A DNA stretch of 64,000 nucleotides, from positions 150,238 to 214,237 of IMG/VR virus record IMGVR_UViG_3300047548_001122, one strand, 5' to 3'. The notes under the pieces are model-generated. The model worked only from the letters and a program-made list of their open reading frames with translations, did not search any database and was not told the origin of the DNA. The position numbers and the translations under genes were made by a program. Shown here one piece after another: positions 7,225-60,575 of this stretch (positions are counted from its first letter, which is position 1; every line of letters starts with the position of its first letter).

Positions 7225-8040
7225 ATGTTACAAGTGATATTTCCTTTTGTTACTGCGGTGGCTTTATCGGCCATCGCAGCTTATTATTCCGTTATAGGTT
7301 TAGCACAAATATTTCCTGGTTCTTTTTGGCCAATCATTATCATGGGGTCTGTATTAGAACTGTCCAAGTTAGTGACAGTTTCATGGTTATACAACAATTG
7401 GACAGATACAATTGGAGTTATGAAATACTATTTTTTGGTATCTATAATTCTTTTAATGACTATTACCTCAATGGGTATTTTTGGTTACCTTTCAAAGGCT
7501 CATTTGGAAACAAATATAATTGTAGGTGCTAATAGTGTTCAAATCAAAACATTAGAACAACAAGAAAAGATAGTAAAAGAAAGACTCGATTACCTATTAA
7601 AAAGAGCTGGCGATCCTGCAACTGCATCTAAAAAGATAGATAAACAAATACAAGAAACGCAACAAGAATTAAAAGAAATAAATGAAAAGAAGTTGCCTCT
7701 ATTAACTGAAGAGAATAAACTAACGGCAGAAATAGGCCCAATTAAATATATTGCCGAGGCTTTATACACAAAAGATGATCCAAACTTTATAGATAAAGCT
7801 GTACGTTTCGTAATACTAATCATCATAGTTGTTTTTGATCCACTGGCAGTTCTTCTTTTGATCGCTTCAAATCAATCGTATAGAAAATACAAAGTGAAAA
7901 ATGAACCAGAGGAAAATAAAAAAACACCCAAGAAGAAAAAGGTTGACAACTCTACAGCACCTAGTGTAGAATTGTTTGCGAAAGAAGATTCAGAATTAAT
8001 ACCTAAATCAAAGATTGCTAATATTGGAGAAATACAATGA
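7225..8040 (+). CDS. Membrane protein with coiled coil
   Basis: Three N-terminal hydrophobic segments, coiled coil, C-terminal TM (IIIVVFDPLAVLLLIA). Confidence 0.7.
   Translation: MLQVIFPFVTAVALSAIAAYYSVIGLAQIFPGSFWPIIIMGSVLELSKLVTVSWLYNNWTDTIGVMKYYFLVSIILLMTITSMGIFGYLSKAHLETNIIVGANSVQIKTLEQQEKIVKERLDYLLKRAGDPATASKKIDKQIQETQQELKEINEKKLPLLTEENKLTAEIGPIKYIAEALYTKDDPNFIDKAVRFVILIIIVVFDPLAVLLLIASNQSYRKYKVKNEPEENKKTPKKKKVDNSTAPSVELFAKEDSELIPKSKIANIGEIQ
7943..7972 (+). promoter_or_regulatory. Sigma70-type promoter upstream of uvsX (inside the previous ORF)
   Basis: TTGACA-18bp-TAGAAT. Confidence 0.5.
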
Positions 8041-9092
8041 GTTTAATGGAAAAGTTAAAAAAAGGTTCGACTATCAAGGAAACATCAATACTTGCTAAGT
8101 CCGAATTCTTTACAGAAAAAGATATGATTCGAACCGATGTGCCTATGGTAAACGTTGCATTATCAGGTTCACTAGATGGTGGCCTAACACCAGGTTTAAC
8201 TATGTTTGCTGGACCATCAAAACACTTTAAGACAGCGTTTGCTCTTTTAATGGCTTCGGCTTACTTGAAGAAATATAGTGATGCTGTCGTTTTGTTCTAC
8301 GATTCAGAATTTGGTACTCCTCAAAAATACTTTGAAACTTTTGGTATCGATACTGATAGAGTTCTACATACACCAATTACAGATGTTGAAGAATTAAAGC
8401 ACGACATTATGAATCAAATGCAAAACATCTCAAAAGGTGAACGTGTAATTATTATTCTAGATTCCATTGGTAACTTAGCATCGAAGAAAGAGATTGAAGA
8501 TTCTCTTGAGGGCAAATCTGTTGCTGATATGACTAGAGCTAAACAGATGAAATCTTTGTTTAGAATGATTACTCCACACCTAACAATTAAAGACATACCA
8601 ATGATTGTTGTCAACCACACTTATAAAGAAATTGGTATGTTTCCGAAAGATATTGTTGGTGGTGGTACAGGTTCTTATTACTCAGCAGATACAATTTGGA
8701 TTCTTGGTCGTCAACAAGAAAAAACCGGAACAGAAATTACCGGTTATAACTTTATCATCAACATTGAAAAGTCGAGATATGTTCGTGAGAAGTCCAAGAT
8801 TCCAATTACAGTAGCTTTCGACGGTGGTATTCAAAAGTATTCTGGTCTACTAGACATTGCATTAGAAGGAAGTTTTGTTGTTAAACCTGCAAATGGCTGG
8901 TATGCAAAAGTAGATCAAGAAACTGGTGAAGTATTAAACAAAGTTCGATTTGATGATACACAAACAAAAGAATTTTGGAGTGATATTTTAACTAATGAAA
9001 AATTTAAAGAATATGTAAGGAAACGTTATGAAATTGCTTATGGAAATATTATGCAAGATATTCCCATGGATGAAGAAACAACAGAGTCCTAA
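8037..9092 (+). CDS. uvsX: RecA-like recombinase UvsX
   Basis: AGPSKHFKT, YDSEFG, DSIGNLASKKE, VGGGTGSYYSAD. Confidence 0.97.
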   Translation: MSLMEKLKKGSTIKETSILAKSEFFTEKDMIRTDVPMVNVALSGSLDGGLTPGLTMFAGPSKHFKTAFALLMASAYLKKYSDAVVLFYDSEFGTPQKYFETFGIDTDRVLHTPITDVEELKHDIMNQMQNISKGERVIIILDSIGNLASKKEIEDSLEGKSVADMTRAKQMKSLFRMITPHLTIKDIPMIVVNHTYKEIGMFPKDIVGGGTGSYYSADTIWILGRQQEKTGTEITGYNFIINIEKSRYVREKSKIPITVAFDGGIQKYSGLLDIALEGSFVVKPANGWYAKVDQETGEVLNKVRFDDTQTKEFWSDILTNEKFKEYVRKRYEIAYGNIMQDIPMDEETTES

Positions 9093-13082: not shown

Positions 13083-14312
13083 ATGAAATTTTTAGACTTT
13101 TTAGTAGAAGCCAAAAATGAAGGCGCAAATCTACACCTAGAACATCTAGAAGATAATATATTTAATTTTGGTGTAAATGGTACTCGACAATCAATTGATT
13201 TTTTAAGATCATTAAGAGATATGTTAGCAGGTCATTCACAATCAAAAGTAAATATTACAACAAAATGGGATGGAGCTCCAGCTGTTATATGTGGAATAAA
13301 TCCTGAAAACGGAAAGTTTTTTGTTGGAACAAAATCTGTTTTCAACAAAGATGGTAAATTAAATTACACCGATGATGATATTGATAAGAATCATCCTGGT
13401 GGGGGATTAAATGAGAAATTAAAAATAGCATTGGCCTTTTTACCAAAACTTGGCATCAAAGGTATATTACAAGGTGATTTGTTATTTACCAAAGGTGATA
13501 TACAATCAGAAACAATTGACGGACAAAAATATATAAAGTTTCAACCAAATACTATTGTGTATGCGGTGCCAACCGATTCAGTTATGGCTAAAAAAATGTT
13601 AGCCTCTCAAATGGGAATAGTTTTTCATACTTCTTATTCAGGAAGAACGATAGATACATTGAAAGCCTCCTTCAATATTGACATTGGAAATTTAACACAA
13701 ACTAAAGACGTTTGGTTCCGAGATGCTTCTTTTGTTGATGCGTCTGGTACTGCAACATTCACCGATAAAGAAACTCAAGCAATAACCTCTCTATTATCTC
13801 AAGCAGGTAGAGTTTTTCAAACCATAAATCCTGTCGTGTTAAATAGAATATCCTCTGGAATATTTAAAGAACAAATTAAGACATTCAATAATACAAAGAT
13901 TAGATCAGGACAAAAAATAACAAATACTGGCCAACATGTTTCAGAATTAATTAAATATATTGAAGATAAACTAAACAAAGAAATACTTGTTGCAAAAAAA
14001 GAAGATACAAAGAAGAAAAGAATTGCCGAAAAGAATGAAGTGATGAGGTTCTATAGAGGAAGTGCCAATCAATTAAAATCTGTTTTTGATTTGATGAACT
14101 TAATAGTTGATGCTAAGTTAATGATAATAAGAAAATTGGAATCAATCAAATCTTCAGTAGATACCTTTGTTAGAACAGAAGATGGTTATAGAGTTACTGG
14201 TCCAGAAGGGTTTGTGGCAGTAGATAGAATAAGTGGTGGTGCATTGAAGTTAGTTGATCGACTAGAATTTAGTCAGACCAACTTTAATGCCGCAAAAAAT
14301 TGGAGCAAATAA
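13083..14312 (+). CDS. Ligase-like nucleotidyltransferase (DUF6267-like) with capsid-targeting N-terminus
   Basis: TKWDG (motif I KxDG), QGDLLF (III), PEGFV (IV), LKLV (V); N-terminus MKFLDFLVE. Confidence 0.65.
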   Translation: MKFLDFLVEAKNEGANLHLEHLEDNIFNFGVNGTRQSIDFLRSLRDMLAGHSQSKVNITTKWDGAPAVICGINPENGKFFVGTKSVFNKDGKLNYTDDDIDKNHPGGGLNEKLKIALAFLPKLGIKGILQGDLLFTKGDIQSETIDGQKYIKFQPNTIVYAVPTDSVMAKKMLASQMGIVFHTSYSGRTIDTLKASFNIDIGNLTQTKDVWFRDASFVDASGTATFTDKETQAITSLLSQAGRVFQTINPVVLNRISSGIFKEQIKTFNNTKIRSGQKITNTGQHVSELIKYIEDKLNKEILVAKKEDTKKKRIAEKNEVMRFYRGSANQLKSVFDLMNLIVDAKLMIIRKLESIKSSVDTFVRTEDGYRVTGPEGFVAVDRISGGALKLVDRLEFSQTNFNAAKNWSK

Positions 14313-19770: not shown

Positions 19771-20434
19771 AATTTTAAAATTAGATGATGGTCCAATTAA
19801 GTATGAGCCAAGTGGCCGTGGACATATTAAGATGGTGGGACATTCTGTGCCATACAGTATTATGCAAAAAGAATTTGATTTTTTACATAATATCATTGTA
19901 GAAAATAATTTACAAAGAGGTTTCGAATTAGCCACAGCATTCGGTATTTCCGGTACAGCAATAGGCACAGCTTTCAAAAAAACAGGTGGAAAGTTTGTAA
20001 CCATGGATGCGTATATTGAAGAGAAGTATGATAACGCAGGAACGTATGAACATTTCCAAAAAGAAGTTTATGAAAAGTCTGATGGATATAAAAGTGTAAA
20101 TTATCTCATAGATAAATTTGAATTAAGAGATACGATGTTTGCTGAAATTGGTTGGTCTCCAGACGATGTTGACAGTATAGTTGGAAAACATTTCACGGAA
20201 AAATTAGATTTTGTATTTTTGGATGCTGGACATTTTGGCGACCAGATGATTAAAGATATTAAAGAAATAAATAAACACTTAGATGAAAAATTTGTTTTTG
20301 TGTTCCACGATATTTACCCTTGGAGTTGCACACAAGAAGTTCATAATCTGTGTATAGAATTGTTTGGAAAAGATATTGATATTAAACTTCCTTATCCGGA
20401 AGGAGAAAATTTAGGCATAATTTCATGTTTATAA
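19760..20434 (+). CDS. Class I SAM-dependent methyltransferase (Methyltransf_24-like)
   Basis: ELATAFGIS, DFVFLDAGH, VFHD. Confidence 0.75.
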   Translation: MLNEILKLDDGPIKYEPSGRGHIKMVGHSVPYSIMQKEFDFLHNIIVENNLQRGFELATAFGISGTAIGTAFKKTGGKFVTMDAYIEEKYDNAGTYEHFQKEVYEKSDGYKSVNYLIDKFELRDTMFAEIGWSPDDVDSIVGKHFTEKLDFVFLDAGHFGDQMIKDIKEINKHLDEKFVFVFHDIYPWSCTQEVHNLCIELFGKDIDIKLPYPEGENLGIISCL

Positions 20435-20889
20435 TTTCACATAGAGCTAATTTAAACGGTCCAGACCCATCAATCGAAAATAAACCTGAATCAATTGTTC
20501 ACGCTATCGATCAGGGATTTTCGGTTGAGGTTGATCTTCGAATGAAAGATCAAAAACTATATTTTGGACATGATGAAGCTCAATATGAAACTGATATTAA
20601 TTTTTTAAAGAAGTACAAACAATATCTATGGATTCATTGTAAAGAAATGGAAACCATGGAGTTTTGTCTTGAACAGGCTCTACACTGTTTCTGGCATAAC
20701 GATGATGATTATACACTGACAAATTACAGATATGTCTGGGCATACCCCGGAAAAGAACCTGTCGGCAAACTAACGATAATGGTGATGCCAGAAAGGCACT
20801 GGAGTCCAGAAGAAACCCTATCAAAAAAACCATTTGGAGTATGCACAGACTACCCTTATGCGTATCAAGATATTATAAATAAGAGATAA
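20425..20889 (+). CDS. Glycerophosphodiester phosphodiesterase-like protein
   Basis: ISHRAN..EN..VEVDL..GHD..WIHCK..GVCTDY. Confidence 0.75.
   Translation: MFIISHRANLNGPDPSIENKPESIVHAIDQGFSVEVDLRMKDQKLYFGHDEAQYETDINFLKKYKQYLWIHCKEMETMEFCLEQALHCFWHNDDDYTLTNYRYVWAYPGKEPVGKLTIMVMPERHWSPEETLSKKPFGVCTDYPYAYQDIINKR
20874..20881 (+). promoter_or_regulatory. T4 late promoter
   Basis: Exact TATAAATA 33 nt before the 914-aa ORF. Confidence 0.7.
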
Positions 20890-20914
20890 AATAACACTGC
20901 TGTAGAGGCGGAGA

Positions 20915-23659
20915 ATGAAATTTAAAGACTTTCTAACAGAAAAGAAAGAAGTACATGCCGTAATGGCCTTTGGGAGAATGAATCCCATAACTTCTGGCCA
21001 CGAAAAATTAGTCAACGCTGTCAAAAAAGTTGCTGCCAAAGTTGGCGGTTCACATATTATCGCACTATCACATTCTCAAGACCCAAAGAAAAATCCTCTC
21101 ACAGCCGCACAAAAAGTCAAATACGCCAAAGGTGCATTTCCTGGCACAAATTTTGTTGCTGCATCTAAAGACGCACCTACATTCTTTGAACACGCCGAAA
21201 AACTATACAAACAAGGTGTAACACATTTACATATGATTGGTGGTTCTGATCGCGTAGAAGAATATAACAAATTACTTCACAAATATAATGGCACACATAA
21301 AGGTGCTCGTTTCAATTTTAAAACCATCGAAGTACATTCTGCTGGTGAACGTGATCCTGATGCAGATGGCGTCGAAGGAATTTCTGCAAGTAAGATGCGT
21401 GAGGCAGCAAGTAAAGGAGACTTTAATACTTTTAAGAAAGGTGCTCCGTCAACAATGTCAGTCGATCTAATGAAACAAATGTATAAAGATGTACGCAAAG
21501 GTATGAACCTTAAAGAAAGTATTAATGAAGAATTTGAAGAACTTTTGATTGAAGGTGTTCACGACAAAGGTATTTTTAAAGCTGTATTTTTAGCAGGTGG
21601 TCCAGGTTCAGGTAAAGATTATGTATTGAGTAATACACTTGATGGTCATGGTTTAACTGAAATCAATTCTGATAAGGCTTTAGAATTTTTAATGGACAAA
21701 AAAGGTCTCGATAAAAGAATGCCTGCAAGTGAAACGGAAGCTAGAGATAAAGTTAGAGCTAAAGCAAAAAATGTTACAGAGCTTCGTCAAAGACTTGCAT
21801 TACAAGGAAGAAATGGACTAATCATTAATGGTACTGGTGATGATGTTGAAAAAGTAACAAGAATCAAATCTAAGTTGGAAGAATTAGGTTACGACACTTC
21901 AATGATTTTAGTGAATACGAATGATGAAGTATCTGCTCAAAGAAATATTGAACGTGGTCAAAGAGGTGGTCGCACAGTACCAGAAACCATTCGTAAAGAA
22001 AAATGGGACAATGTTCAAAATGCTCGTACTGAATATGCAAAACTTTTTTCTAATAATTATATGGAGTTTGATAACTCCGAAGATTTGAGACAAGCTCCTC
22101 CTGATGTTGTTAAAAGTAAAAAAATGGAGATGATGCAACTGTTTAAAAACGTACAACAGTTTGTTGCACAACCTCCTCAATCACCTGCTGCACAAGAGTG
22201 GGTAGCAAATGAATTAGAACAAAAAGATACTCTTAAACCACCAAAAAATGGTGTTGAACAAGTTGTACCACATGGTTCGAGTGCAGCAGAAGAAGCCAGA
22301 AAATTAGGATTACAATATTATGGTTTCGGTAGATATGGTAAAAACGGAAAAACTACACACCGTTCCATTCATGATAAACTTGTACAAGTTACTGATAAAA
22401 AACCAGAACAACCTAAACTACCTACACCTGGTTCTTCACCAATTTCAAACAAAAAAAATGTTTCAGAAGAAATTAATATTGATGAAGAATTTAACGAAAT
22501 GCTTGATTCTTTAGATGAAGATTTACGTAAATGGTTTGACCCAAAACATCCAGAAGGTGGTTGGAAAAGAATTAACTCTAAAGGTGAAGCTATAGGTCCT
22601 TGCGCTCGTGAACCAGGTGAACCAAAACCAAAATGCATGTCAAACGAAAAGAGAGCTAAGTTGAGTAAACAAGAAAGAGCTTCTGCTGTTGCTGCAAAAC
22701 GCAAACATGATCCTATTGCAGATAGATCGGGTAAAGGTGGTAAACCAGTAAACGTTTCCAATTTTGGAAAAGGTAAATTGTCTGAATCTGTAACAGTTTC
22801 AATTACTGGTGATACTGTTGATGAAGTTAAAGATTTCTTCAACACAATGGGATCAAATTTAAATACAACTACAGAACAATATGCATTATCAGATTCCAAA
22901 AAAGAATTGATAACTCTGGGTAAATTTACTCAACCATTTGGTGAGAAAATGGAAAATACCACCATTACAAATGATATGGTTGAAAATATGCTTGAACAGA
23001 AAGAACCTAATTTACTCAAAGACAAGAGTGGTAAAGTTAGGGTATTCATGTTAAGATCGGTAGCGGCTAAAGAAGCTCATACAAGTCAAGGTACAGTTTT
23101 AAAGTATAAAAACGGTTATGTCGTTAAACTAAAAGAGGAGATTGAAGATGTTGAAGTTTATAAAGGAACTATTCGGAATTGGATTGAAGAATCCAGAAAA
23201 ACATGGATTGGAGGGAGCAACCAGAGCACCCAACGAGGACTTCTCACAGAGAGTGGAACAATATCAAACGGAAGTTCCGAAGGTAGAGGAACCGAAAGTA
23301 GAAGAATTGAAAGTGGAGAAACCAAAGAAGAAACAACCATCCAAGAAGCCTGCGAAAATAACTCCACAACCGCAACCAAAAAAATCACCCTCGCAGAAAT
23401 CAAACAGAGGCAGAAAGCCAAACACCAAAAACAAATCGACGAAATAGATCGAGGTATTGAACCTGGCATATCAATGGCTGGTGCTGGCGAAGGCATCGGC
23501 CGTGATATGGGTGAAAAAATTAAAAAAAGGTCACATAAAGTTACTGTTGTTGAATTAACTGGTGATGAAACAACAGCATCTATTGGTGACCAAAAAGAAG
23601 ATGAGTTAAAGAAAAAAGGTATCTCACTAACTACATTTAAAAAGAGAAACTACATATGA
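20915..23659 (+). CDS. Multidomain polyprotein: HIGH-type nucleotidyltransferase + zeta-toxin/PNK-like P-loop kinase + small modules
   Basis: MKFKDFLTE N-terminus; FGRMNPITSGH..GSDR..ISASKMR; LAGGPGSGK..INSD..RGGRTVP; acidic linkers LKESINEE, LLIE, SLDE, KLSE. Confidence 0.8.
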   Translation: MKFKDFLTEKKEVHAVMAFGRMNPITSGHEKLVNAVKKVAAKVGGSHIIALSHSQDPKKNPLTAAQKVKYAKGAFPGTNFVAASKDAPTFFEHAEKLYKQGVTHLHMIGGSDRVEEYNKLLHKYNGTHKGARFNFKTIEVHSAGERDPDADGVEGISASKMREAASKGDFNTFKKGAPSTMSVDLMKQMYKDVRKGMNLKESINEEFEELLIEGVHDKGIFKAVFLAGGPGSGKDYVLSNTLDGHGLTEINSDKALEFLMDKKGLDKRMPASETEARDKVRAKAKNVTELRQRLALQGRNGLIINGTGDDVEKVTRIKSKLEELGYDTSMILVNTNDEVSAQRNIERGQRGGRTVPETIRKEKWDNVQNARTEYAKLFSNNYMEFDNSEDLRQAPPDVVKSKKMEMMQLFKNVQQFVAQPPQSPAAQEWVANELEQKDTLKPPKNGVEQVVPHGSSAAEEARKLGLQYYGFGRYGKNGKTTHRSIHDKLVQVTDKKPEQPKLPTPGSSPISNKKNVSEEINIDEEFNEMLDSLDEDLRKWFDPKHPEGGWKRINSKGEAIGPCAREPGEPKPKCMSNEKRAKLSKQERASAVAAKRKHDPIADRSGKGGKPVNVSNFGKGKLSESVTVSITGDTVDEVKDFFNTMGSNLNTTTEQYALSDSKKELITLGKFTQPFGEKMENTTITNDMVENMLEQKEPNLLKDKSGKVRVFMLRSVAAKEAHTSQGTVLKYKNGYVVKLKEEIEDVEVYKGTIRNWIEESRKTWIGGSNQSTQRGLLTESGTISNGSSEGRGTESRRIESGETKEETTIQEACENNSTTATKKITLAEIKQRQKAKHQKQIDEIDRGIEPGISMAGAGEGIGRDMGEKIKKRSHKVTVVELTGDETTASIGDQKEDELKKKGISLTTFKKRNYI
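23148..23447 (+). CDS. Nested +1-frame Lys/Pro-rich small protein
   Basis: GAGGAG SD 7 nt before ATG 23148; MLKFIKELFG amphipathic start, VEEPK repeats, basic tail. Confidence 0.55.
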   Translation: MLKFIKELFGIGLKNPEKHGLEGATRAPNEDFSQRVEQYQTEVPKVEEPKVEELKVEKPKKKQPSKKPAKITPQPQPKKSPSQKSNRGRKPNTKNKSTK

Positions 23660-24183
23660 AGTCATTTACTCAATTCATAAACGAAGAAGTTGAAATTCTG
23701 GATGAAATGCCTGGTGCCAATATGGACACCAGAGCGGTTCATCAACATCTGAAAAAACAAGGATGGAAATTAACCAGAAGTTCTGGCAATCATGATGTGT
23801 TTACTCATCCAGATGCTAAACATCACATTCCCGTTCCTCGTCACAAACAATTGAAAGCTCCTTTAGTTCGTGGTATCTTAAAACAAGCTAAAGTAAATGA
23901 AGAAGTTGAATTGGATGAAACTGCTGCATGGCAACGTAAAGAAGGTAAAAATCCTGAAGGTGGATTAAACCGTAAAGGTATCGAATCGTATCGCCGTGAA
24001 AATCCTGGTTCTAAACTATCGATGGCTGTAACTACTCCTCCATCAAAACTAAAACCAGGTTCAAAGGCTGCAAAGAGAAGAAAATCCTTTTGTGCAAGAA
24101 TGGGTGGTATGCCTGGTCCAATGAAGGATGAAAAAGGTCGTCCAACAAGAAAAGCATTATCTTTGCGTAAATGGAACTGCTAA
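23656..24183 (+). CDS. Capsid-targeted two-module protein: HicA-family toxin domain + KSFCARM module
   Basis: MKSFTQFINE; LKKQGWKLTRSSGNHDVFTHP..IPVPRH..LVRGILKQA (HicA); EEVELDE linker; AAWQRKEGK..RKSFCARM..LRKWNC. Confidence 0.8.
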   Translation: MKSFTQFINEEVEILDEMPGANMDTRAVHQHLKKQGWKLTRSSGNHDVFTHPDAKHHIPVPRHKQLKAPLVRGILKQAKVNEEVELDETAAWQRKEGKNPEGGLNRKGIESYRRENPGSKLSMAVTTPPSKLKPGSKAAKRRKSFCARMGGMPGPMKDEKGRPTRKALSLRKWNC

Positions 24184-25482
24184 ATGGCACAGTTTAGAAC
24201 CGACAAAAACATTATCGATTCGGGTCAAGTATTTACTCGATATGAGATAATGATGTTATCTGATAGGCTGACACCATCTGGTACAGCCACAGATGCGTTC
24301 GGTCGTTTACGTGTTGCTGAACCACATACTCTTTTTGATTCACAACATCAAGACGTTGAAAATGATAAATGGGATACACTCATTACAGGTTCGGGCACCA
24401 AAACACATTTACCAAATGAATCTGTAATTGCTTTAGAAATTGGTACTGCAAATAACGATGGTATTATTCGTGAAACACTAAGAACAATGCCATACCAACC
24501 AGGCAAATCATTGTTGATTATGAGCACATTTGCTATGGGACAACCAAAAGCGAACGTTGTTCAGAGAGTAGGATATTATGGAGCAAATAACGGAATTTAT
24601 TTTGAAAACGATTCTGGAAATAACTATGTTGTATTAAGAAGTTCTGTTACAGGAAATGTTGTAGAAACTAGAGTTGCACAAACAAATTGGAATGTGGATA
24701 AATTTGATGGTACGGGATATTCGAGTCAGGGAACAGGACCAGAACACGTTGATGGAATAAATGTAAACAAATCAAATCTTTTTTGGATTGATATTGAATG
24801 GCTAGGCGTTGGTGATGTTCGATGTGGTTTTTTGAATGACGGCCTATTAAAAACTGCACACATATTTCATAACGACAATAAAAACAATACAACTTATATG
24901 CGTAGTGCAATTCAACCATTGCGATATGAAATATTTAACAAAGGTGTTACAACATCAAATACGCTGATGCGTCAAATTTGTTCTACAGTCATATCCGAAG
25001 GTGGTTATACACAAATTAATCAATCAAGGTCAGCATCAAATCCTTTGGCTGGTAAAAACTTAACTGTTAGTATTAATAACCCAATGGTAAGCCTTCGGTT
25101 AAAAAATGGTAGAACAAATGCTGTCGTTGTACCTGTTGCAATTGATATGTATGGATTACAAGCAACAGCATTTAAATATAGAGTGTATGAGAATGTCACA
25201 AGTTTAACCGGTCCATCATGGGTTACAACCGACGCCGCAAGTGCAGTTGAGTATGATATATCGGCAACGGCAATGACTGGTGGAACTTTACTTAAAGAAG
25301 GTATTTTCAAAGGATTAGAAGTTGCAAAAGAAGTTAATTTGTTACAACTATTAGATGGTGTTATACAACTAACAAGAAAAATAAATGCAAACACTGGCGA
25401 CATATTCACGGTTGCAATAGAACCAACAACAAACAACGATGATGCTATCGTAGCATTATCATGGCAAGAACACATTAATTAA
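24184..25482 (+). CDS. Probable virion structural protein (beta-rich)
   Basis: DAFGRLRV..YQPGKSLL..EWLGVG..ICSTVISEGG pattern in late region. Confidence 0.6.
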   Translation: MAQFRTDKNIIDSGQVFTRYEIMMLSDRLTPSGTATDAFGRLRVAEPHTLFDSQHQDVENDKWDTLITGSGTKTHLPNESVIALEIGTANNDGIIRETLRTMPYQPGKSLLIMSTFAMGQPKANVVQRVGYYGANNGIYFENDSGNNYVVLRSSVTGNVVETRVAQTNWNVDKFDGTGYSSQGTGPEHVDGINVNKSNLFWIDIEWLGVGDVRCGFLNDGLLKTAHIFHNDNKNNTTYMRSAIQPLRYEIFNKGVTTSNTLMRQICSTVISEGGYTQINQSRSASNPLAGKNLTVSINNPMVSLRLKNGRTNAVVVPVAIDMYGLQATAFKYRVYENVTSLTGPSWVTTDAASAVEYDISATAMTGGTLLKEGIFKGLEVAKEVNLLQLLDGVIQLTRKINANTGDIFTVAIEPTTNNDDAIVALSWQEHIN

Positions 25483-25497
25483 AAATAGGAGACTCAA

Positions 25498-26904
25498 ATG
25501 TTTCAAGACAAACTAACAAGAGAAATTGCTGCAGCTGCTGCACAAATCAAAACAGAACCACCAAAGAATGAAGTTAATTCTGAGTCTGTTGAGGGTGCAG
25601 TCGTTTCTGTTATGACGAATGAAGAACTAAAAGGCAATCAACACAAGATTGATGCTAACAAAAACGGCAAAGTTGATGCACATGACTTTAAACTTCTTCG
25701 TGCCAAGAAAGGTAAAACGGTAGAAGAAGGCATTAAAGGTGCTGGTATAGGTGCTGCTGTAGGTTCTGTTGCTGGTGGACCGATTGGTGCAGCAGTTGGT
25801 GGTGCTTTGGGGCATGTAGCAGGTGAAGTTCTATCAAGTGCTAAGAATAAAACAAAAGCTATGTATCGTATTGCAAAAGGTCCTTCGATGGCCGACAGCA
25901 AAATAAAGAAAGAAGAAGTTGAAGAACTCGATGAATTGTTTGGAAAAGGTAAATTACCAGCAATTGCAGCATATCACAAAGAAAAAGGTGCTGAAGCTAA
26001 AGGTAAGATGGAAACAATTAGAAGTGGTAACACTAAACTTCCTGTTCCAAAATCTACATCTGCTAAAATCTTTTCTAAAGATGCTGAAGCTAAATATCAT
26101 TCAACTCAGGAGAAAAGAGCAAAATCTTTGATGAAAAAAGAAGAAGTTGAATCCGTTGAAGAGGGATTTGGTGATCTAGTTAAAGGTATTAAACGTGTCG
26201 TTGCCGGTAAAAAGAGTCCTAGTGCCGTAAGAGATGCACACTTAGCAAAATCTGCTTTTAGTACAGATCCGAAAGTTAAAGAGCGTGAAGGTCGCCGTTA
26301 CGATAAAGTGGATAACTTCATGATGAAAAAAGAAGAAACGGAATTGGATGAAGCCTTTCCAACTGTAGCTGATGCTAGAAAACGTATGGCTGCAAAAGAA
26401 AGTGGTTTCGAGAAAAAGAAAATTTCTACTGGTACAGTTTACTCACGTAAGTATAAGGCAGAACCAGAAGAGAATGATGAAGCGCCAAAGAAAAAGGCCA
26501 AGACCATGAAAGAAATGTTGAGTATCTATTCAGCAGGTGGCGCCGAAGCTTTGGTAGAAAATCTCATGATCGAAGAACCATCACAAGATGAATATAAAAA
26601 GGAAGTTGAAACTGCTCAGGCAAAAGCTGACGGTAAAATTCGTAACGATAAAGGTATAGCTAAAGCAGCATCACAGGGTGTAAAGATGGAAGAAGTTGAA
26701 ATTGAAGTTCTTGATGCAGATGAAATCAATGGAGTTCAGATTGACAATATTGAAGAGCGCCACATGACTGATGCTGAAATGGATAAACGTGAAGAAATCG
26801 TTAAGTCAATGAAAAAAGGTATTCAAGGTTTCAAAGATCGTTATGGCGATAAAGCAAAAAATGTAATGTATGCTACTGCAACCAAATTGTCCAAAAAGGA
26901 TTAA
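25498..26904 (+). CDS. Modular polyprotein with repeated KKEEVExxxE linkers (putative head internal protein)
   Basis: EF-hand-like DANKNGKVDAHD, glycine zipper and several basic modules separated by acidic linkers. Confidence 0.7.
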   Translation: MFQDKLTREIAAAAAQIKTEPPKNEVNSESVEGAVVSVMTNEELKGNQHKIDANKNGKVDAHDFKLLRAKKGKTVEEGIKGAGIGAAVGSVAGGPIGAAVGGALGHVAGEVLSSAKNKTKAMYRIAKGPSMADSKIKKEEVEELDELFGKGKLPAIAAYHKEKGAEAKGKMETIRSGNTKLPVPKSTSAKIFSKDAEAKYHSTQEKRAKSLMKKEEVESVEEGFGDLVKGIKRVVAGKKSPSAVRDAHLAKSAFSTDPKVKEREGRRYDKVDNFMMKKEETELDEAFPTVADARKRMAAKESGFEKKKISTGTVYSRKYKAEPEENDEAPKKKAKTMKEMLSIYSAGGAEALVENLMIEEPSQDEYKKEVETAQAKADGKIRNDKGIAKAASQGVKMEEVEIEVLDADEINGVQIDNIEERHMTDAEMDKREEIVKSMKKGIQGFKDRYGDKAKNVMYATATKLSKKD

Positions 26905-26906
26905 AC

Positions 26907-28334
26907 ATGAAGAAGATGTCTGACGTTTTCAAATCCATTCGTTTTGCCAAAATGGACCCAAAACACGATAAGCCCGAAATTGGTGGTTCGAAAGATGACG
27001 AGGAACATTATACTGTTGGTGAAAAGGAATATGAACAACAGGTAAAACATGTAAAAAAGCGTGCTATGCAAGAAGAAAAGAAAGACAAATATGATGAAGG
27101 TGAATATGACCGAGAAGGCGATATGGCTAAATCTGATCTTCGTTCTATCATTGCAAATGCAAAAAGATTGCATGATATGATCGAAGATTCGGCTAACCTT
27201 CCTGAATGGGTGCAGTCTAAAATTACTGTTGCTGAAGATTATATTTCTACAGTTGCTAATTATATGACATCAGAAATGAGTGAAGGGGTATCTGATAAGT
27301 TGTACAAATCTCATCAAGATTTGCGTAAGAAGAGTGGGTTACCTCATCCCGATTACTACAAAGCATTAGGTAAATCTTATGACATTGAAGATGATAAAGA
27401 ACGCCTTACACATCAATCTGAATTAAAGAAAAAATATGGTGTGAAAGAAGAGGTTGAACTTGAAGAGTCCTCTAAATTTGCAAAAATTTTTGATAAGAGA
27501 GTCAAACAAAGAGAACTCAATAAATTACCTAAAGAACCAAAAGGTGAATATGAACGTAAAGTGGACAAGTATTTGAAGAAGAAATATAACAAAGAAGAAG
27601 TTGAACTTCAAGAAGGTCGTCCATCACAACGCCATCCATTAGAGGGTCATGAGTATCACAAAAAGTCTAATGAAGAATTGATTGGTATTGCTAAAGATGC
27701 ACATGCGGCTGCTGAAGCAATGAAGGGTCACAGTACCAGAGCAGAAAACAAATATCGTGACCAAGCAAATGATTCTGCAACAGTACGTTATTTCCGACAA
27801 AAGAGTGGTATGCCTGACTGGTACAAAAAGAAGTATGGTCATGTCAAAGAAGGAGTAGAACTTGAAGAGGGTTTACAACAAACTCTTAGAAAAGTTGTTC
27901 CTGGTTATGCAAAGAAACAAATAAACGATAAAATGGACCGTGAAAAGTTTGGTAGAAGAGATGTGGATAAAGACGAGAATTATTATCGTTATAAAAAAGT
28001 CCTCGACAAATTAAAAAAAGAAGATGTTGAACAATTAGAAGAAAAGAATGTTCCAACTTCTCCAGAAAAATGGGCTCAAGCCAAAGCACAAGCAAAGGCC
28101 AAGTTTGACGTTTATCCTTCTGCCTATGCAAATGGTTGGGCTGCAAAGAAATATAAAGCAATGGGTGGTGGTTGGAAATCAGTCAGTGAAGAATCTATTT
28201 TAGAGTCTCGTAAGGCTGAAATTGTCAAAAAGATAGTTAAGAGTAAAAAAACTAATAGTGATGATAAATTTGAACCTAACCCTATCATGTCGAAAGATGA
28301 AGATAGGGGCAGAGATAACATAAATAACAAGTAA
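26907..28334 (+). CDS. Modular polyprotein with repeated KEEVELxE linkers (putative head internal protein)
   Basis: EGDMAKS..LPEWVQSKIT module, HPLEGHEYH module, YPSAYANGW..GGGWK module; four KE(E/G/D)VE(Q)LxE linkers. Confidence 0.7.
   Translation: MKKMSDVFKSIRFAKMDPKHDKPEIGGSKDDEEHYTVGEKEYEQQVKHVKKRAMQEEKKDKYDEGEYDREGDMAKSDLRSIIANAKRLHDMIEDSANLPEWVQSKITVAEDYISTVANYMTSEMSEGVSDKLYKSHQDLRKKSGLPHPDYYKALGKSYDIEDDKERLTHQSELKKKYGVKEEVELEESSKFAKIFDKRVKQRELNKLPKEPKGEYERKVDKYLKKKYNKEEVELQEGRPSQRHPLEGHEYHKKSNEELIGIAKDAHAAAEAMKGHSTRAENKYRDQANDSATVRYFRQKSGMPDWYKKKYGHVKEGVELEEGLQQTLRKVVPGYAKKQINDKMDREKFGRRDVDKDENYYRYKKVLDKLKKEDVEQLEEKNVPTSPEKWAQAKAQAKAKFDVYPSAYANGWAAKKYKAMGGGWKSVSEESILESRKAEIVKKIVKSKKTNSDDKFEPNPIMSKDEDRGRDNINNK
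28319..28326 (+). promoter_or_regulatory. T4-type late promoter
   Basis: CATAAATA before ORF 28359. Confidence 0.5.
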
Positions 28335-28358
28335 AAACAATTTTTAGGAGAAATAAAA

Positions 28359-28697
28359 ATGCCTTTATTTTCAGCAACAGATGCAAACACCGGTGCCCCA
28401 AAATGGGCAGTAGCTAGTGGTCTTGGTGTGTCTGCAAATGGATTTACATTATATGCAAACACCACTTCTGGTGCATACGTAAGTGGCGCAGCAGTTGGTG
28501 TTTTTGGTGTTAACGCAACAGAAATCGGTCTAGCAAATAATGCCTTAAATAAACCAGCACATACTGGTTGGGTATTAAGAACGCAAGGTACTGGTGGTCG
28601 TGCAGGTCGTATTCAAACTGAAGTTCTTGTAGCCGGCGGTATGAGTGCTGACACTTCAGCAACAGCTAACGACAACGTTGTTTACGCCAATACCTAA
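28359..28697 (+). CDS. Probable virion structural protein
   Basis: HTGWVLRT.GTGGRAGR.QTEVLVA motif; strong SD; late promoter. Confidence 0.6.
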   Translation: MPLFSATDANTGAPKWAVASGLGVSANGFTLYANTTSGAYVSGAAVGVFGVNATEIGLANNALNKPAHTGWVLRTQGTGGRAGRIQTEVLVAGGMSADTSATANDNVVYANT

Positions 28698-29116
28698 TGA
28701 GATACGAGGACGATAGCATCGAATCTGCTTCGACACCTAAAACCATTCAGGCAGGTCAAGCAATCGATGCACATGAACCATCAGGTGAGGATTCAATCTC
28801 AGCATTGAATCCGAACGTGATTACTGAAATCAATTTCAGACTCAGAAATGAACTGAATGAAATATTACTCAATGCCGATCAAGGTATTCAAAAAATAAGA
28901 AAGACCTTGCATCGGTATGGGTTTGATTTACCTGCTATTTACGAGGCAGATAGAGAAGGTGATGAACTAGTCATTGAATTAAATCAATTTGGATTCGATG
29001 ATATAGAGAGTAATATATACATTTTGTATTATATGACTGATAAAGGAGTTTATGAGTTTTATGCTGAAATTGGTGATGACGAACGTATGGATGAACTATT
29101 GTCCGACGGTATTTAA
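28697..29116 (+). CDS. Hypothetical acidic protein
   Basis: ORF coupled to the upstream gene. Confidence 0.6.
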   Translation: MRYEDDSIESASTPKTIQAGQAIDAHEPSGEDSISALNPNVITEINFRLRNELNEILLNADQGIQKIRKTLHRYGFDLPAIYEADREGDELVIELNQFGFDDIESNIYILYYMTDKGVYEFYAEIGDDERMDELLSDGI

Positions 29117-29744: not shown

Positions 29745-30246
29745 TTTTTTATCGACAGAGTTTTTGGAGTATGTTGTTAATTCAGTATTGATTTTGGGTA
29801 TTGTTGGTACTATCGTAGGATTTTTTGGCGGCAAAATACCTTTTGTCGGGTCTTATTTAAATATTATTAAATATGTTTCTATTGTTCTATTCTGCATTGG
29901 TTTATATTGGAAAGGTGGAATGAGTGTAGAAAAAGAATGGCGTCAAAGAGTTGAAGAGATGGAAGCAAAAGTAAGAGCTGCCGAAGAAAAGTCAAAAGAA
30001 GTAAACACTGAAATAGAAACGAAAGTAGTTCAAAAAACTAAAGTAATCAGAGAAAAGGGTAAGATACAGATTGAATATATCAATCGTTTAGTTGAAGGTA
30101 AAACGGTTGAAATCGTAAAAGATATGAGTGCAGAAGAAAGAGCAGTTTTTGAAGCAAAACAAAAAGAATTATTAGATTCAATCAAAAATTGTCCAATACC
30201 TAGAATTATTATAGAAGAACATAATAAAGCGACAGAATCAAAATGA
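29731..30246 (+). CDS. Putative inner-membrane spanin (Rz-like)
   Basis: N-terminal TM segments plus coiled coil ending in Cys; directly followed by a lipoprotein. Confidence 0.6.
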   Translation: MWLLSFLSTEFLEYVVNSVLILGIVGTIVGFFGGKIPFVGSYLNIIKYVSIVLFCIGLYWKGGMSVEKEWRQRVEEMEAKVRAAEEKSKEVNTEIETKVVQKTKVIREKGKIQIEYINRLVEGKTVEIVKDMSAEERAVFEAKQKELLDSIKNCPIPRIIIEEHNKATESK

Positions 30247-30509
30247 AATCATACACTATTTTATTAAGTTTATTACTTGTTGGTTGTTCGACAACTGTAC
30301 CTGTCGTAGCAAAGTTTCCAGAAGCACCAAAATCTTTAACAGAAAATTGTTCACCGTTGAAAAAAATAGACGGTGAAACTGTTTCTATTGTAGATTTGCA
30401 CAAAGTTGTGGTTGAAAATTACACCACACATCATGAATGTGCCATAAAGGTAGAATCTTGGAATGAATGGTATATTAAACAGAAACAAATATTTGAGGAA
30501 ATAAAATGA
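30243..30509 (+). CDS. Putative outer-membrane spanin lipoprotein (Rz1-like)
   Basis: Lipobox LVGC, Pro-rich segment, two further Cys. Confidence 0.65.
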   Translation: MKSYTILLSLLLVGCSTTVPVVAKFPEAPKSLTENCSPLKKIDGETVSIVDLHKVVVENYTTHHECAIKVESWNEWYIKQKQIFEEIK

Positions 30510-30859
30510 AATATTTAATGATTGCAGTATTATCAATTTCTTTAATGGGTTGTACTACTATTAAAAAATATTGGCCAAGAGATCATGACCCCGTTATGTT
30601 TAGTCAGTTAGTTGAAATTGATAGAATGGTTGAAATGGTAGATTGTGAAAATCCTGATTGGCGTATGGCTGAAAATTTAAGTTCACATTTATCCAGATAT
30701 ACTGAATGGCGTCAAGACCCACAAGCGGAAAATATTAAAGGTTTACATTCTCATACTGTTCGTATGAGTAAAGGTGGCAGTAAAACGTTTTGTGAACTCG
30801 GTAAAAAAACTGCTGCACAAAGAATACAAGCAGCTAAAAGTGCATGGGAGGGAAGATAA
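30506..30859 (+). CDS. Lipoprotein
   Basis: Lipobox LMGC. Confidence 0.65.
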   Translation: MKYLMIAVLSISLMGCTTIKKYWPRDHDPVMFSQLVEIDRMVEMVDCENPDWRMAENLSSHLSRYTEWRQDPQAENIKGLHSHTVRMSKGGSKTFCELGKKTAAQRIQAAKSAWEGR

Positions 30860-57369: not shown

Positions 57370-57609
57370 ATGAATGAAAAAATAAAACAATTGGCAGAGA
57401 AAGCAGGTTTCCATCTATGGGAAAATGAACCGTGGAAACCAGAAGGTGCTGTTGTTGATTGGTCATGTAATTATGATTCTGAATTGGAAAAATTTGCTGA
57501 GTTGATTATTCGTGAATGTGGCTTATCGTTGAATCCTATGTTGCGTGATATGATTAGTCGTGGACATGCATACGATTTAATTAAACAAAATTTTGATATT
57601 GAAACGTGA
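57370..57609 (+). CDS. MNE(R/K)I..FAELIIxEC family small protein
   Basis: Paralog of 60991, 61570 and 62601. Confidence 0.65.
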   Translation: MNEKIKQLAEKAGFHLWENEPWKPEGAVVDWSCNYDSELEKFAELIIRECGLSLNPMLRDMISRGHAYDLIKQNFDIET

Positions 57610-57616
57610 GTAATGA

Positions 57617-58213
57617 ATGTTTATTTTTGATGTAGAAACCCTTGGCAAGCAATCTCATTCAGTGATTCTATCGATGGCATGTATCTATTTTAATCCTGAT
57701 GAAGATATAAATTTTCGTGAATTAAAAGAATCGGCCTTCTTTGCAAAGTTTGACGCTGAAGATCAGATAAAGAGATTGAATCGTAAAGCAGGAAAATCCA
57801 CCATTGAATGGTGGGCAAAGCAATGTGATAATGTACGAAACAAATCATTCAAGCCATCAAGTATCGATGAAAAATTTGAAGATGGTTATGAGCGTATGCG
57901 TGAATGGGTAAAATCCAAAAACGATACAAAATGTTGGGTTTGGGCTCGAGGCAATTTAGATCAGTTGGTTATGGATGATATTGAAGAATCTATTGGCCTC
58001 GAGCCAATTTTTCCTTATGCTCGATGGCGTGATGTGAGAACTGCTATCGATTTTCTTTATGGCACAATGAATGGTTACGTTGAAGTTGATGTACCGCCAT
58101 GGGTTGAAGAGTTTGATCCACAATTACATATAACCAAACATGATCCAGTTGATGATTGTGTTTTTGATGCGATGATGCTAAAATATGGAAAAACACAAAT
58201 TCGGGATGAATGA
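57617..58213 (+). CDS. DEDDh 3'-5' exonuclease (DexA-like)
   Basis: FDVETLG, WARGNLD, RDVRT, HDPVDDC. Confidence 0.85.
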   Translation: MFIFDVETLGKQSHSVILSMACIYFNPDEDINFRELKESAFFAKFDAEDQIKRLNRKAGKSTIEWWAKQCDNVRNKSFKPSSIDEKFEDGYERMREWVKSKNDTKCWVWARGNLDQLVMDDIEESIGLEPIFPYARWRDVRTAIDFLYGTMNGYVEVDVPPWVEEFDPQLHITKHDPVDDCVFDAMMLKYGKTQIRDE

Positions 58214-58784
58214 AAAAATATTCATTATAGCTGGCAATTATAATGAATATAAAGATTGGGTGCAAAAAAACATGGCGCGCCTATATTCAGAAAATAATTC
58301 AATCAGTTTATCAAATTTTGTTTATGTTGATAGTATCGATAGACTTCGCGGCCGAAAAGAGGTGCATGGGTTTTTTATTGGGTCGTATGAAAATAGAGCC
58401 GACTATCGAAAGATAAAAGCTTATATTGAGATAGTAAATTCTGTAAACAAAGTAATAAAAAATGATCTTGCTGACCCCGATGATGTAAAAGCAGTCGTTA
58501 AAAAAATAAATGGCGGAAGCTTATACGGCACAATTCCAAGTGGTAACGCAGCACCCTATACAAAATTTAACGAAACAAGGTTTTGTCCCGTAGTCGTTTA
58601 TCATCAAAATAAAATAATAGATTCAAAAACTTGGGATGAAGAATTGTGGGTAGAACGAGGTGAAGATTATTATGGTTTAATGAGCTCACAATTGGTAAAT
58701 AAAAAAGTTAGGGTAATTGACCGTGAAGAGTGGTTAAAATCACCAGTGATAGTTAAAGATATAAACTATGTTGACAGGAGTTAA
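58207..58784 (+). CDS. Hypothetical protein
   Basis: ORF in operon; start uncertain. Confidence 0.5.
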
Positions 58785-58789
58785 AAAGT

Positions 58790-59200
58790 ATGTTAGAATG
58801 TTTAATAGTGGGTGACAGTATTGCTGTCGGTGTTTCACAAGTAAGGCCTGAGTGTCAAGCAATCGCTAAGAGTGGTATTAATTCCTCGAATTGGAATAAA
58901 CTTCATTTACACAAATTAAAACCCACAAAAACTTTAATTATTAGTTTAGGTGCCAATGATTTGGGTATTAATACTGAAGGTAATATTCGTTCGTTGAGAA
59001 CAATGGCAAATGCTGAAAAAGTATTTTGGTTGTTACCTAGTCAAAAACTAAAACCGAAACAAGTTGAAGCTGTGAAACAAGTTGCATCAGAATTTGGTGA
59101 TACAGTAATACCACGACCAGAAAAAGATATTTCTGGTGATGGTGTTCACCCAACCTATAAAGGTTATAAAGTTTTAGCTGAACAAACTAAGGAACATTAA
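58790..59200 (+). CDS. SGNH/GDSL hydrolase
   Basis: GDSI, LGAND, DGVHP. Confidence 0.85.
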   Translation: MLECLIVGDSIAVGVSQVRPECQAIAKSGINSSNWNKLHLHKLKPTKTLIISLGANDLGINTEGNIRSLRTMANAEKVFWLLPSQKLKPKQVEAVKQVASEFGDTVIPRPEKDISGDGVHPTYKGYKVLAEQTKEH

Positions 59201-59385
59201 TGAAAATTTTAACTACTACAACCTTTGGTCGTCCTGTATCCTTTAACTGTGCTTTGATTAGTCGAGTTGAAGAACACGTTTCAGAAAATCAAAAAACCTG
59301 GATTTATACTGGCAATGAAATGTTGGGCATTATCATTGATATGTCTTACCTTGAAGTTGTGGGATTTTTGAAAGCAATCGAATGA
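59200..59385 (+). CDS. Hypothetical protein
   Basis: Coupled ORF. Confidence 0.5.
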   Translation: MKILTTTTFGRPVSFNCALISRVEEHVSENQKTWIYTGNEMLGIIIDMSYLEVVGFLKAIE

Positions 59386-59597
59386 ACATGATATGGAAAA
59401 CTTTAGCGCCGTATAAAAAAGTTTATTATGATGAATCTAGTGGCCTTATTTTTGGTATAGTTCTATATAATGTATCTGATGGTACAGCTCAAGGATATTA
59501 TAATAATAAACTTATTGGTGATTTTATATCTGAAGATAAAGCAAAAAATGCCGTTGAGAATCACCATGCAGTTGAATTAATGGAATATCCACAATGA
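59382..59597 (+). CDS. Hypothetical protein (paralog-like of next ORF)
   Basis: W..YY..G.I.G..LG.(F/Y)I..AK.AV shared with 59594. Confidence 0.55.
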   Translation: MNMIWKTLAPYKKVYYDESSGLIFGIVLYNVSDGTAQGYYNNKLIGDFISEDKAKNAVENHHAVELMEYPQ

Positions 59598-59842
59598 AAG
59601 AATATAAGTGGGAACGCCATCGTGATAATTATTATTACTATGAGATCGATACTGGCAAAATTCGTGGACTTGCATCGAAGATAGCCTTGAGTGAAATTTG
59701 GATCGGACTCATATACATTGGTGACATGTCATATACGATTAATGATGAAAAACATTTAGGTCAGTATATTACAATGGAATTTGCAAAAGAGGCAGTACAA
59801 AGATTTTGGGACATTCAAAATAGGACTTTACTCGAGCAATGA
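59594..59842 (+). CDS. Hypothetical protein
   Basis: Coupled ORF; same motif as 59382. Confidence 0.55.
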   Translation: MKEYKWERHRDNYYYYEIDTGKIRGLASKIALSEIWIGLIYIGDMSYTINDEKHLGQYITMEFAKEAVQRFWDIQNRTLLEQ

Positions 59843-60021
59843 AAAATTTTTTAAGGACCACACTACCATTAATTATAATCGGTATATTGGTAATAATGTT
59901 TTTAATTTTTATGCCGCAACCTAAACAGCAGGTTGTAAATTGTAGTCTGGTGGAAATATCGCCTGATTTTACAGCCGAACACCGCAAGGAGTGTAGAATG
60001 ATACGAGGCACAAAACTATGA
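59839..60021 (+). CDS. Small membrane-anchored protein
   Basis: TM + CSLVEISPD..ECR. Confidence 0.55.
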   Translation: MKNFLRTTLPLIIIGILVIMFLIFMPQPKQQVVNCSLVEISPDFTAEHRKECRMIRGTKL

Positions 60022-60206
60022 AATTCTTTTCAAGTCCGTTGAATTGGTTGATCGCCTTTGTGGGATTATTGTGTATTGCATTGGTGTTCATTATGATGCG
60101 AAACCTGGATTATCGTACCGAACAATGCACTGAGAAAAAAGGTACAATGGTAAGAACGTTAGAAGGTTGGCGATGCCTTGATGTGCGAGAATTGAAACTA
60201 GATTAA
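60018..60206 (+). CDS. Small membrane-anchored protein
   Basis: TM + C..KGTMVR..C. Confidence 0.55.
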   Translation: MKFFSSPLNWLIAFVGLLCIALVFIMMRNLDYRTEQCTEKKGTMVRTLEGWRCLDVRELKLD

Positions 60207-60388: not shown

Positions 60389-60575
60389 ATGGGTATTTAT
60401 AAAGGCGAATAAAATTGAAAGAATATACTGCATTATCGGACAGTGATAAGTATGAGTTGATAAATGAGTTTTTCAAGACTACGCCAGGTTTACCAAACCC
60501 TGACAATCAGCCTATGATCGTGAAAACTCTGTTTAAATTTTTTCTGTATAGTAAAGGGTATGAGGTGCCCAAATA

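Follow-up and report, generated by a model that had tools for sequence, protein, structure and literature searches.

Acidic in-frame linkers in a polyprotein array of a freshwater T4-type phage: joints of cassette exchange and predicted head-protease sites

Linkers and genes of the cluster

We analyzed a stretch of 64,000 nucleotides (nt; hereafter the window, positions 150,238 to 214,237) that forms the final 64 kb of the virus record IMGVR_UViG_3300047548_001122, a sequence of 214,237 bp with terminal repeats and 34% G+C. Our subject is a short acidic linker of the type K-E-E-V-E-(x)-L/I-x-E, of which the window holds ten in-frame copies in three plus-strand genes between positions 23656 and 28334. 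The source phage is a freshwater T4-type myovirus: a gp43-like polymerase, a UvsX-like recombinase, and a DnaB-like helicase are encoded in the window, and portal, gp21-type protease, gp22-like scaffold, and gp23 are encoded outside it in the same genome. Its nearest cultured DNA relatives are cyanomyoviruses and Pelagibacter phages, with matches limited to short stretches, and the sequencing runs that contain its DNA are freshwater and lake metagenomes.

A first-pass annotation, made from the sequence alone, had listed nine copies of the linker, all of which we find in place, in frame, and on the plus strand. It overlooked a tenth, which carries an exact GAAGAAGTTGAA at 26689 (MEEVEIEVLD). 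The ten linkers are as follows, by open reading frame (ORF), with the start as first listed in brackets where it differs:

L1, 23683-23706, plus strand: EEVEILDE, in ORF 23656-24183
L2, 23899-23919, plus strand: EEVELDE, in ORF 23656-24183
L3, 25912-25935 (25909), plus strand: EEVEELDE, in ORF 25498-26904
L4, 26140-26163 (26137), plus strand: EEVESVEE, in ORF 25498-26904
L5, 26332-26352 (26329), plus strand: EETELDE, in ORF 25498-26904
L6, 26689-26715, plus strand: EEVEIEVLD, in ORF 25498-26904
L7, 27447-27467 (27444), plus strand: EEVELEE, in ORF 26907-28334
L8, 27594-27614 (27591), plus strand: EEVELQE, in ORF 26907-28334
L9, 27849-27869 (27846), plus strand: EGVELEE, in ORF 26907-28334
L10, 28020-28043 (28017), plus strand: EDVEQLEE, in ORF 26907-28334

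With at most one mismatch allowed, the window contains 13 matches to GAAGAAGTTGAA, where shuffled sequences lead one to expect 0.78 (highest count in a shuffle, 5); eight of the 13 are linkers. The motif and its narrow distribution are direct observations: Among 277 ORFs scanned genome-wide, the peptide motif is confined to five proteins, the products of the three array genes and two head-core proteins, both encoded beside the prohead protease gene. In a repeat search the linkers make up the main direct-repeat families of the region (D1-D4), and the longest exact words they have in common are 15-17 nt. That GAA and GTT are the commonest codons of this AT-rich genome would favor chance, low complexity, or an assembly artifact as the origin of the pattern; given the excess of matches, the restriction to five proteins, and the presence of the motif in thousands of homologues from many samples, we regard the probability of such an origin as close to nil.

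The genes and other features on which the argument draws are the following; CTS stands for capsid targeting sequence and aa for amino acids:

20874..20881, plus strand: TATAAATA, which we take to be the T4 late-promoter consensus, ∼34 nt ahead of the cluster's first gene and the sole copy in 20001-29000
20915..23659, plus strand: 914-aa polyvalent protein with the CTS-like start MKFKDFLTE, a cytidylyltransferase-like domain, a Zeta-toxin-like P-loop kinase, and further domains
23656..24183, plus strand: 175-aa gene with the CTS-like start MKSFTQFINE, then L1, a HicA module, L2, and a DUF6321 module
23707-23898, plus strand: HicA module (Pfam HicA_toxin, 4e-13)
23920-24180, plus strand: DUF6321 module (Pfam DUF6321, 3e-23)
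24184..25482, plus strand: 432-aa virion structural protein that has no linkers and serves as the conserved anchor of the locus (phrog_1645, 2e-102)
25498..26904, plus strand: 468-aa polyprotein of five modules with L3-L6, hypervariable in the L3-L5 slot
26907..28334, plus strand: 475-aa polyprotein of five modules with L7-L10, the final module DUF5872-like, with >4678 database homologues
8037..9092, plus strand: UvsX-like recombinase (phrog_97, 3e-92)
G000:C1:129486-129944, outside the window: gp21-type prohead protease, Peptidase_S77 (PF03420, E = 3e-35; phrog_207, head maturation protease)

ORF 20915 matches Pfam Zeta_toxin (3e-12) and phrog_3041, cytidyltransferase (4e-64), and its domain borders are marked by acidic L-I-E and L-D-E stretches. 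When the array proteins are split at their linkers, the modules measure 42-180 aa. Twelve of the 13 modules have a net charge of 0 to +17 and one of -3, and the linkers range from -4 to -6. A glycine-zipper stretch occurs among the modules of the 468- and 475-aa proteins, whose ORFs lie in different frames, 2 nt apart (26904-26907). The best-conserved DNA of the locus is at 25621-25714, which is 87%-90% identical to relatives within flanks of ∼70% and has very high depth in lake runs. It encodes NEELKGNQHKIDANKNGKVDAHDFKLL, which, as an impression only, we take to resemble an EF-hand calcium-binding loop.

Gain, loss, and exchange of cassettes

The first-pass annotation had proposed that modules are added, deleted, or swapped in frame at the linkers. 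Module orders, breakpoints, and variants on lake contigs all agree with this: Modules are gained, lost, swapped, and permuted in frame, with joints at linkers, and we hold with high confidence that cassettes shuffle there. Syntenic loci (L002-L038) were retrieved by means of the 432-aa anchor protein, and modules were analyzed at the level of homologues among the best 120 of the >4678 database homologues of ORF 26907-28334. The combinatorics are plain to see: In these 120 homologues, ∼30 module families occur in ∼69 orders, as clustered with the linkers removed, since linkers alone create single-linkage matches. Module homology begins at the first residue after the linker. The syntenic loci occupy the same place with differing numbers of modules, one of them with a 1431-aa gene that has at least nine linkers. 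Arrays are found in the clade with an anchor identity of at least 49%, and a strict motif filter finds nearly none farther out (one match, L014). Modules also change genes: In the window the HicA module precedes the anchor, and in L002, L004, and L011 it is part of genes downstream of it.

Of the clean insertions, 71% are bounded by a linker on at least one side, versus 19% expected, and 10.5% on both, versus 0.7%, by a linker filter that overlooks degenerate linkers. At the DNA level, 10 out of 19 distinct homology breakpoints with respect to close relatives fall in a linker ±6 nt, against an expectation of 10.6% (p = 7e-6). The mapping of breakpoints was a check suggested along with the first proposal, and it directly shows an enrichment at linkers. 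An analysis of the ends of high-scoring segment pairs from all-against-all BLAST of the proteins gave a 2.5- to 3-fold enrichment near linkers that is noisy because the pairs extend into the conserved linker, and it was dropped.

Two cassettes of ORF 26907 illustrate the process:

27615..27848, plus strand: GRPSQRHPLEGH cassette, between L8 and L9
27870..28019, plus strand: GLQQTLRK cassette, between L9 and L10, which natural populations may have or lack

The GRPSQRHPLEGH cassette has 94.0% DNA identity with that of L011 (14 differences in 234 nt, 13 of them at third codon positions), whereas other alignable DNA of the two loci is 66%-76% identical (two short stretches, 80%-87%) and the anchor protein 49%. 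On each side the identity drops to chance within 24-36 nt, inside the linkers. The cassette has apparently been exchanged recently between diverged phages. The L9-L10 slot before the final module holds at least nine different cassettes in relatives, and in L044 its cassette is replaced by another. In orthologues of ORF 25498, with flanks of 85%-88% DNA identity, the L3-L5 slot contains two cassettes in the window, one in L042, and five in L044. L042 also has an additional 45-codon cassette at L8, with GAAGAAGT(C/T)GAA on either side. The gene after the array (28359-28697) encodes 112 aa in the window and 265 aa in L042 and L044; DNA homology is lost at ∼28474 and regained at 28695, a second variable spot that is free of linkers.

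Variant contigs from other lakes and from fish-gut samples extend the picture. The L9-L10 cassette is absent in four runs (X5, X6, X7, and X8), in which 27852 is joined to 28029, and in run X10 there is a seamless loss of 171 nt (57 codons) that joins 27845 to 28017, with 10 nt fitting both sides. One variant has extra sequence inserted at L9 and flanked by linker sequence on either side. Other joints end at the starts of L3, L4, L6, L8, and L10, and one of these connects the first module of ORF 25498, in frame, with the final module of ORF 26907. Lake contig X8 joins 25703 to 28017 with 22 nt between them and thereby restores a single frame across both genes, so that ORFs 25498 and 26907 behave as a single cassette space. 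Joints outside linkers are seen as well (26915 to 27072 and 28183 to 27081). The recurrence of the same variant joint in four independent runs, with a near-equivalent in a fifth, speaks once more against an artifact. The exact repeats do not exceed 17 nt and thus fall below the usual length of assembly words, which makes assembly chimeras improbable as the source of the variant joints.

Cultured cyanophages yielded single modules and one gene of three modules with weaker linkers; a full array was found in no cultured phage. The three-module gene, that of Synechococcus phage S-BM3 (OQ319121; L040 2033-3046), encodes the hypothetical protein T4-GC_119 by the small terminase gene and joins three of the same module families. 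Its protein has an EEYIEE|KNVPT junction and, before DUF6321, an internal CTS-like KSFKDFTE|GAAW, and the gene looks like a fossil gene fusion at a CTS. The array principle may therefore extend beyond the freshwater clade.

Three modules of ORF 26907 end in KKKY just before the linker, as first noted (KKKYGVK-EEVELEE, KKKYNK-EEVELQE, and KKKYGHVK-EGVELEE). The past module duplication that had been read from the region fares less well: The likeness between RKKSGLPHPDYYK and RQKSGMPDWYK exists but is weak (8 out of 14 residues identical; E = 0.002, BLASTP, single comparison). The four residues preceding the linker core travel together with the upstream module (P < 0.0004), and for the linker tail the conditional mutual information with either neighboring module is not significant in either direction.

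As all modules are bounded by the same short sequence, an exchange within the linker yields a product that is in frame and, if the linker is a protease site (see below), cleavable, and the locus may in this way evolve as an open cassette array. How the joints arise is a separate question. T4 is known to undergo amplifications and deletions by recombination at microhomologies of 6-10 bp, and since the present phage encodes UvsX, the linker cores of 12-17 nt are plausible substrates. Selection alone, however, predicts the same pattern of joints, because only in-frame, cleavable junctions survive. The data locate the joints, and we give about even odds to microhomology rather than selection as what places them. 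The description of the locus as an integron-like array fits the outcome and not the mechanism: Pfam and PHROG scans of the genes at 20915-29113 and four further window genes returned no integrase family, and no att-like site was noted, although no search dedicated to integrases or att sites was made.

The linker as a predicted head-protease site

The published cleavage motif of the T4 prohead protease gp21 is L/I-X-E, with cleavage after Glu; Asp at position P1 blocks processing, and the T4 scaffold and core proteins are substrates that gp21 cleaves repeatedly. The linker shares with this motif its closing L/I-x-E, a link overlooked in the first-pass annotation, and a gp21-type protease gene is present in the genome. 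For three module families we surveyed the 12 residues that precede the module in the 120 best homologues, with no filter for linkers. All of the 126 distinct contexts have Glu at P1, and 120 have Leu or Ile at P3; P2 is variable. A second count, with a filter that permits Asp at P1, finds Glu in 139 out of 139 linkers. In the window all linkers end in L-x-E except L4 (V-E-E) and L6 (EEVEIEVLD). The phage's own gp23 retains L-T-E|A, ∼5 residues off the F-L-T-E|A of T4 in the alignment, the mature start of T4 gp23 being deduced from chain lengths of 456 and 521 residues.

Elsewhere in the genome the extended motif is carried only by the gp22-like scaffold (phrog_237) and by an unannotated protein of 271 aa, whose gene lies between those for portal and protease. 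Two unannotated ORFs, of 271 and 148 aa, lie in this interval (L046 1903-3158, corresponding to G000:C1:127802-129060) and begin with MKSLNEFKNLVEE and MKLINLILE, respectively. The 271-aa protein contains the linker-like stretches SEEVQLEE and REETEEINE. A family search on the two ORFs gave no match; their products probably belong with the gp67/gp68-type core proteins of the prohead.

The neighboring genes begin with CTS-like stretches, likewise missed in the first-pass annotation. The T4 CTS is MKTYQEFIAE, in which positions 4 and 7 serve targeting and positions 8 and 10 processing. MKSFTQFINE, MKFKDFLTE, and MKFLDFLVE resemble it, with aromatic residues at 4 and 7, Ile or Leu at 8, and Glu at 10. 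In the window such N-termini occur in ORFs 23656 and 20915 and, away from the cluster, in ORF 13083; genome-wide there are four against 0.43 expected. Linker and CTS have only the processing half (I/L-x-E) in common, the linker being without the targeting aromatics, as would suit an arrangement in which each polyprotein has a single targeting signal and each module its own cutting site. The same modules can follow either element: The GRPSQRHPLEGH module stands behind a linker in the window and directly behind the CTS MKSFKSYITE in L003, and DUF6321 stands behind a linker in most loci and behind a CTS in L020. The ORF at 13083-14312 encodes a 409-aa DUF6267 protein (Pfam, 2e-113) with its domain immediately after the CTS-like MKFLDFLVE start, and is a further candidate for a packaged protein, away from the array. 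As phrog_455 covers DUF6267 as well as the cytidylyltransferase portion of ORF 20915, other phages probably have the two as a fusion.

These results suggest that the linker is conserved at the protein level because it ends in the prohead-protease motif, next to genes with T4-like CTSs. Proteolytic processing would most likely be its main reason for being kept, and we consider it rather probable that the array linkers are cut by the phage's own head protease. For the reading as a whole, that the three genes encode polyproteins of packaged internal proteins that are split in the prohead by the gp21-type protease, we estimate a probability of roughly 0.65. The genes would be expressed late, along with the virion structural protein, and the polyproteins would enter the prohead, two neighboring genes bearing a T4-like N-terminal CTS. 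The head protease would then cut at L/I-x-E of the linkers to give proteins of about 40-180 residues, which, like the internal proteins of T4, would remain with the DNA and enter the next host by injection.

Several points weigh against this reading. ORFs 25498 and 26907 have N-termini without a canonical CTS. The L/I-x-E motif is short and present inside modules too, and the EEVE portion upstream of it is conserved, yet not demanded by the T4 motif. A single cut would leave the acidic linker on the C-terminus of the upstream module. Cleavage, packaging, injection, and module functions are predicted from sequence, for this phage and its relatives. Structure prediction helps little: A low-confidence AlphaFold2 model of ORF 26907, from a 14-sequence alignment, is all-helical with a pLDDT (predicted local distance difference test) of 46 and unfit for fold searches, and co-folding the 175-aa protein with the protease yielded nothing on which to draw.

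Perhaps the proteins act uncut, as multidomain polyvalent proteins; the acidic linker would then be only a spacer, flexible or helix-breaking, with a sequence maintained for solubility or spacing. There is precedent for polyvalent proteins of phages that combine many effector domains, and the linkers lie at helix breaks in the low-confidence model. A spacer, however, needs no invariant Glu at its end with Leu or Ile two residues earlier and would not be expected to reappear in a scaffold protein, and the modules also occur as separate CTS-led genes in relatives and hence should be able to act alone, so that we judge this explanation unlikely. The linkers might instead be repeated capsid-targeting or scaffold-binding motifs, or DNA-mimicking acidic patches, and not cutting sites: They are acidic, repeated, and present in head-core proteins too, and ORFs 25498 and 26907 need some other way into the head. 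With no aromatics at the targeting positions of the T4 CTS and only I/L-x-E in common with it, such a role is highly improbable, and head-protease cleavage remains the reading that we prefer.

The first-pass annotation had held that the linker is conserved as DNA too, and the corresponding alternative is that it is kept as a recombination joint, with UvsX-type microhomology as the selected function and the peptide as secondary. Genome-wide, Glu is encoded by GAA in 85% of cases and Val by GTT in 50%. In the linkers of the window, Val is GTT in 10 out of 10 cases, compared with 53% in the rest of these genes. Glu is GAA in 32 out of 35, while Leu is spread over five codons. The EEVE core has a DNA identity of 0.887, above the 0.818 of simulations with genome-wide codon usage (P = 0.0008) and marginally above the 0.844 expected from gp23-like usage (P = 0.04). 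The L-x-E tail shows no excess (0.654 against 0.671 expected, P = 0.76). The comparison of synonymous identity with codon bias, the other check first suggested, therefore comes out above expectation for the core and not for the tail. In eight loci pooled, GTT (32 out of 41) and CTT (17 out of 32) are above the genome average and similar to the gp23 of this phage (25 out of 30 and 14 out of 35). Codon-pair context was ruled out as a cause of this GTT/CTT preference; Leu after Glu is CTT in 19% of cases genome-wide.

The excess DNA identity is thus real but small, less than one nucleotide in twelve; codon preference at conserved residues could account for it, as could a shared ancestry of the linkers. 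As stated, conservation as DNA is not supported, the excess being limited to the EEVE core. The recombination-joint alternative draws on this core excess and the uniform GTT, on the breakpoints in linkers with one deletion whose 10 nt fit both sides, and on the short microhomologies used by T4 together with the encoded UvsX. Set against it are the five Leu codons and the unremarkable tail, the same GTT/CTT preference in gp23, and orthologous linkers that vary in residues and codons alike. The constraint on residues (P1 Glu, 126 out of 126) far exceeds that on DNA, and joints at linkers are expected equally from selection against out-of-frame or noncleavable junctions. We therefore think it quite improbable that the linker is kept mainly as a joint, and favor its conservation as a protease site.

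Other window genes, known systems, and implications

Two groups of genes lie apart from the array. Small ORFs at 57370, 60994, 61570, and 62598 (within 57370-62822) begin with MNE(K/R)I, have the common motif (F/L)(A/S)EL(L/I)(I/V)(R/Q)(E/D)C, and look like a paralogue family near the genome end. At 30243-30859, a membrane protein is followed by two adjoining small ORFs that are lipoprotein-like (MKSYTILLSLLLVGC and MKYLMIAVLSISLMGC). In relatives the corresponding gene carries Pfam LysC, and this is probably a lysis/spanin cassette.

The closest known parallel to the array as we read it is the set of T4 internal proteins (IPI, IPII, IPIII, and Alt). Both belong to T4-type phages with a gp21-type protease, M-K-x-F/Y-x-x-F-I/L-x-E leaders, the L/I-X-E motif, small and highly basic products (here predicted), and a hypervariable set of cargo. 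In T4, however, the internal proteins are separate genes, each cut once behind its CTS, whereas here up to five modules (at least 10 in L002) stand in one reading frame with a cutting motif between each pair, and two of the three array genes have no canonical CTS. The T-even phages reportedly have hyperplastic internal-protein loci that vary in number, order, and identity of genes, for which Repoila et al. 1994 are said to have proposed shuffling by way of short conserved flanks. The joints in that account are reportedly noncoding, promoter-containing repeats of ∼70 bp between separate genes, as against the coding linkers of 21-24 nt described here.

For polyvalent proteins (Iyer et al. 2017, PMC5512222), delivery along with the DNA has been predicted, as has proteolytic release, the latter by way of an embedded metallopeptidase domain. 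That article does not use the word "linker," and "prohead" occurs in its reference list only. Like them, the present cluster combines unrelated effector domains in one polypeptide beside virion genes (cytidylyltransferase with Zeta toxin, and HicA with DUF6321, next to a phrog_1645 protein). Pfam and PHROG scans of the four genes found no embedded peptidase (MPTase) domain, and release is here proposed to occur, unlike in polyvalent proteins, by the head protease in trans at a repeated motif.

In polymorphic toxins, too, a short conserved peptide (VENN in CdiA, DPxGL in Rhs) borders a swappable module, is tied to processing, and is thought to act as a recombination joint. CdiA and Rhs swap only the C-terminal toxin with its immunity gene, whereas here the cassettes are internal, fill several slots, and come without immunity genes. 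With integron arrays the locus shares a fixed genomic place and an open-ended set of cassettes that are gained, lost, and reordered; unlike integron cassettes, these are parts of one reading frame and one protein. In the literature that we searched on CTSs of metagenomic phages, on DUF6321, and on internal-protein polyproteins we found no earlier description of such an array, although earlier accounts may exist.

More broadly, and only tentatively, a large clade of freshwater and partly marine T4-like phages may use a protein-level operon that doubles as a cassette array, in which the protease site serves as the standard joint for injected anti-host effectors with no dedicated recombinase; the polyprotein might also keep HicA-like toxins inert until they are cut in the capsid. 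Proteins injected by phages are the first move against host defenses and are difficult to recognize outside T4. If the reading is true, linker and CTS together would be a simple signature for thousands of candidate injected effectors in environmental T4-like phages, and many effectors would be packaged through one targeting signal. A functional peptide motif would then make a standard point of in-frame exchange, a natural case of modular evolution, and the arrangement suggests a design rule for loading several cargo proteins into T4-type capsids.

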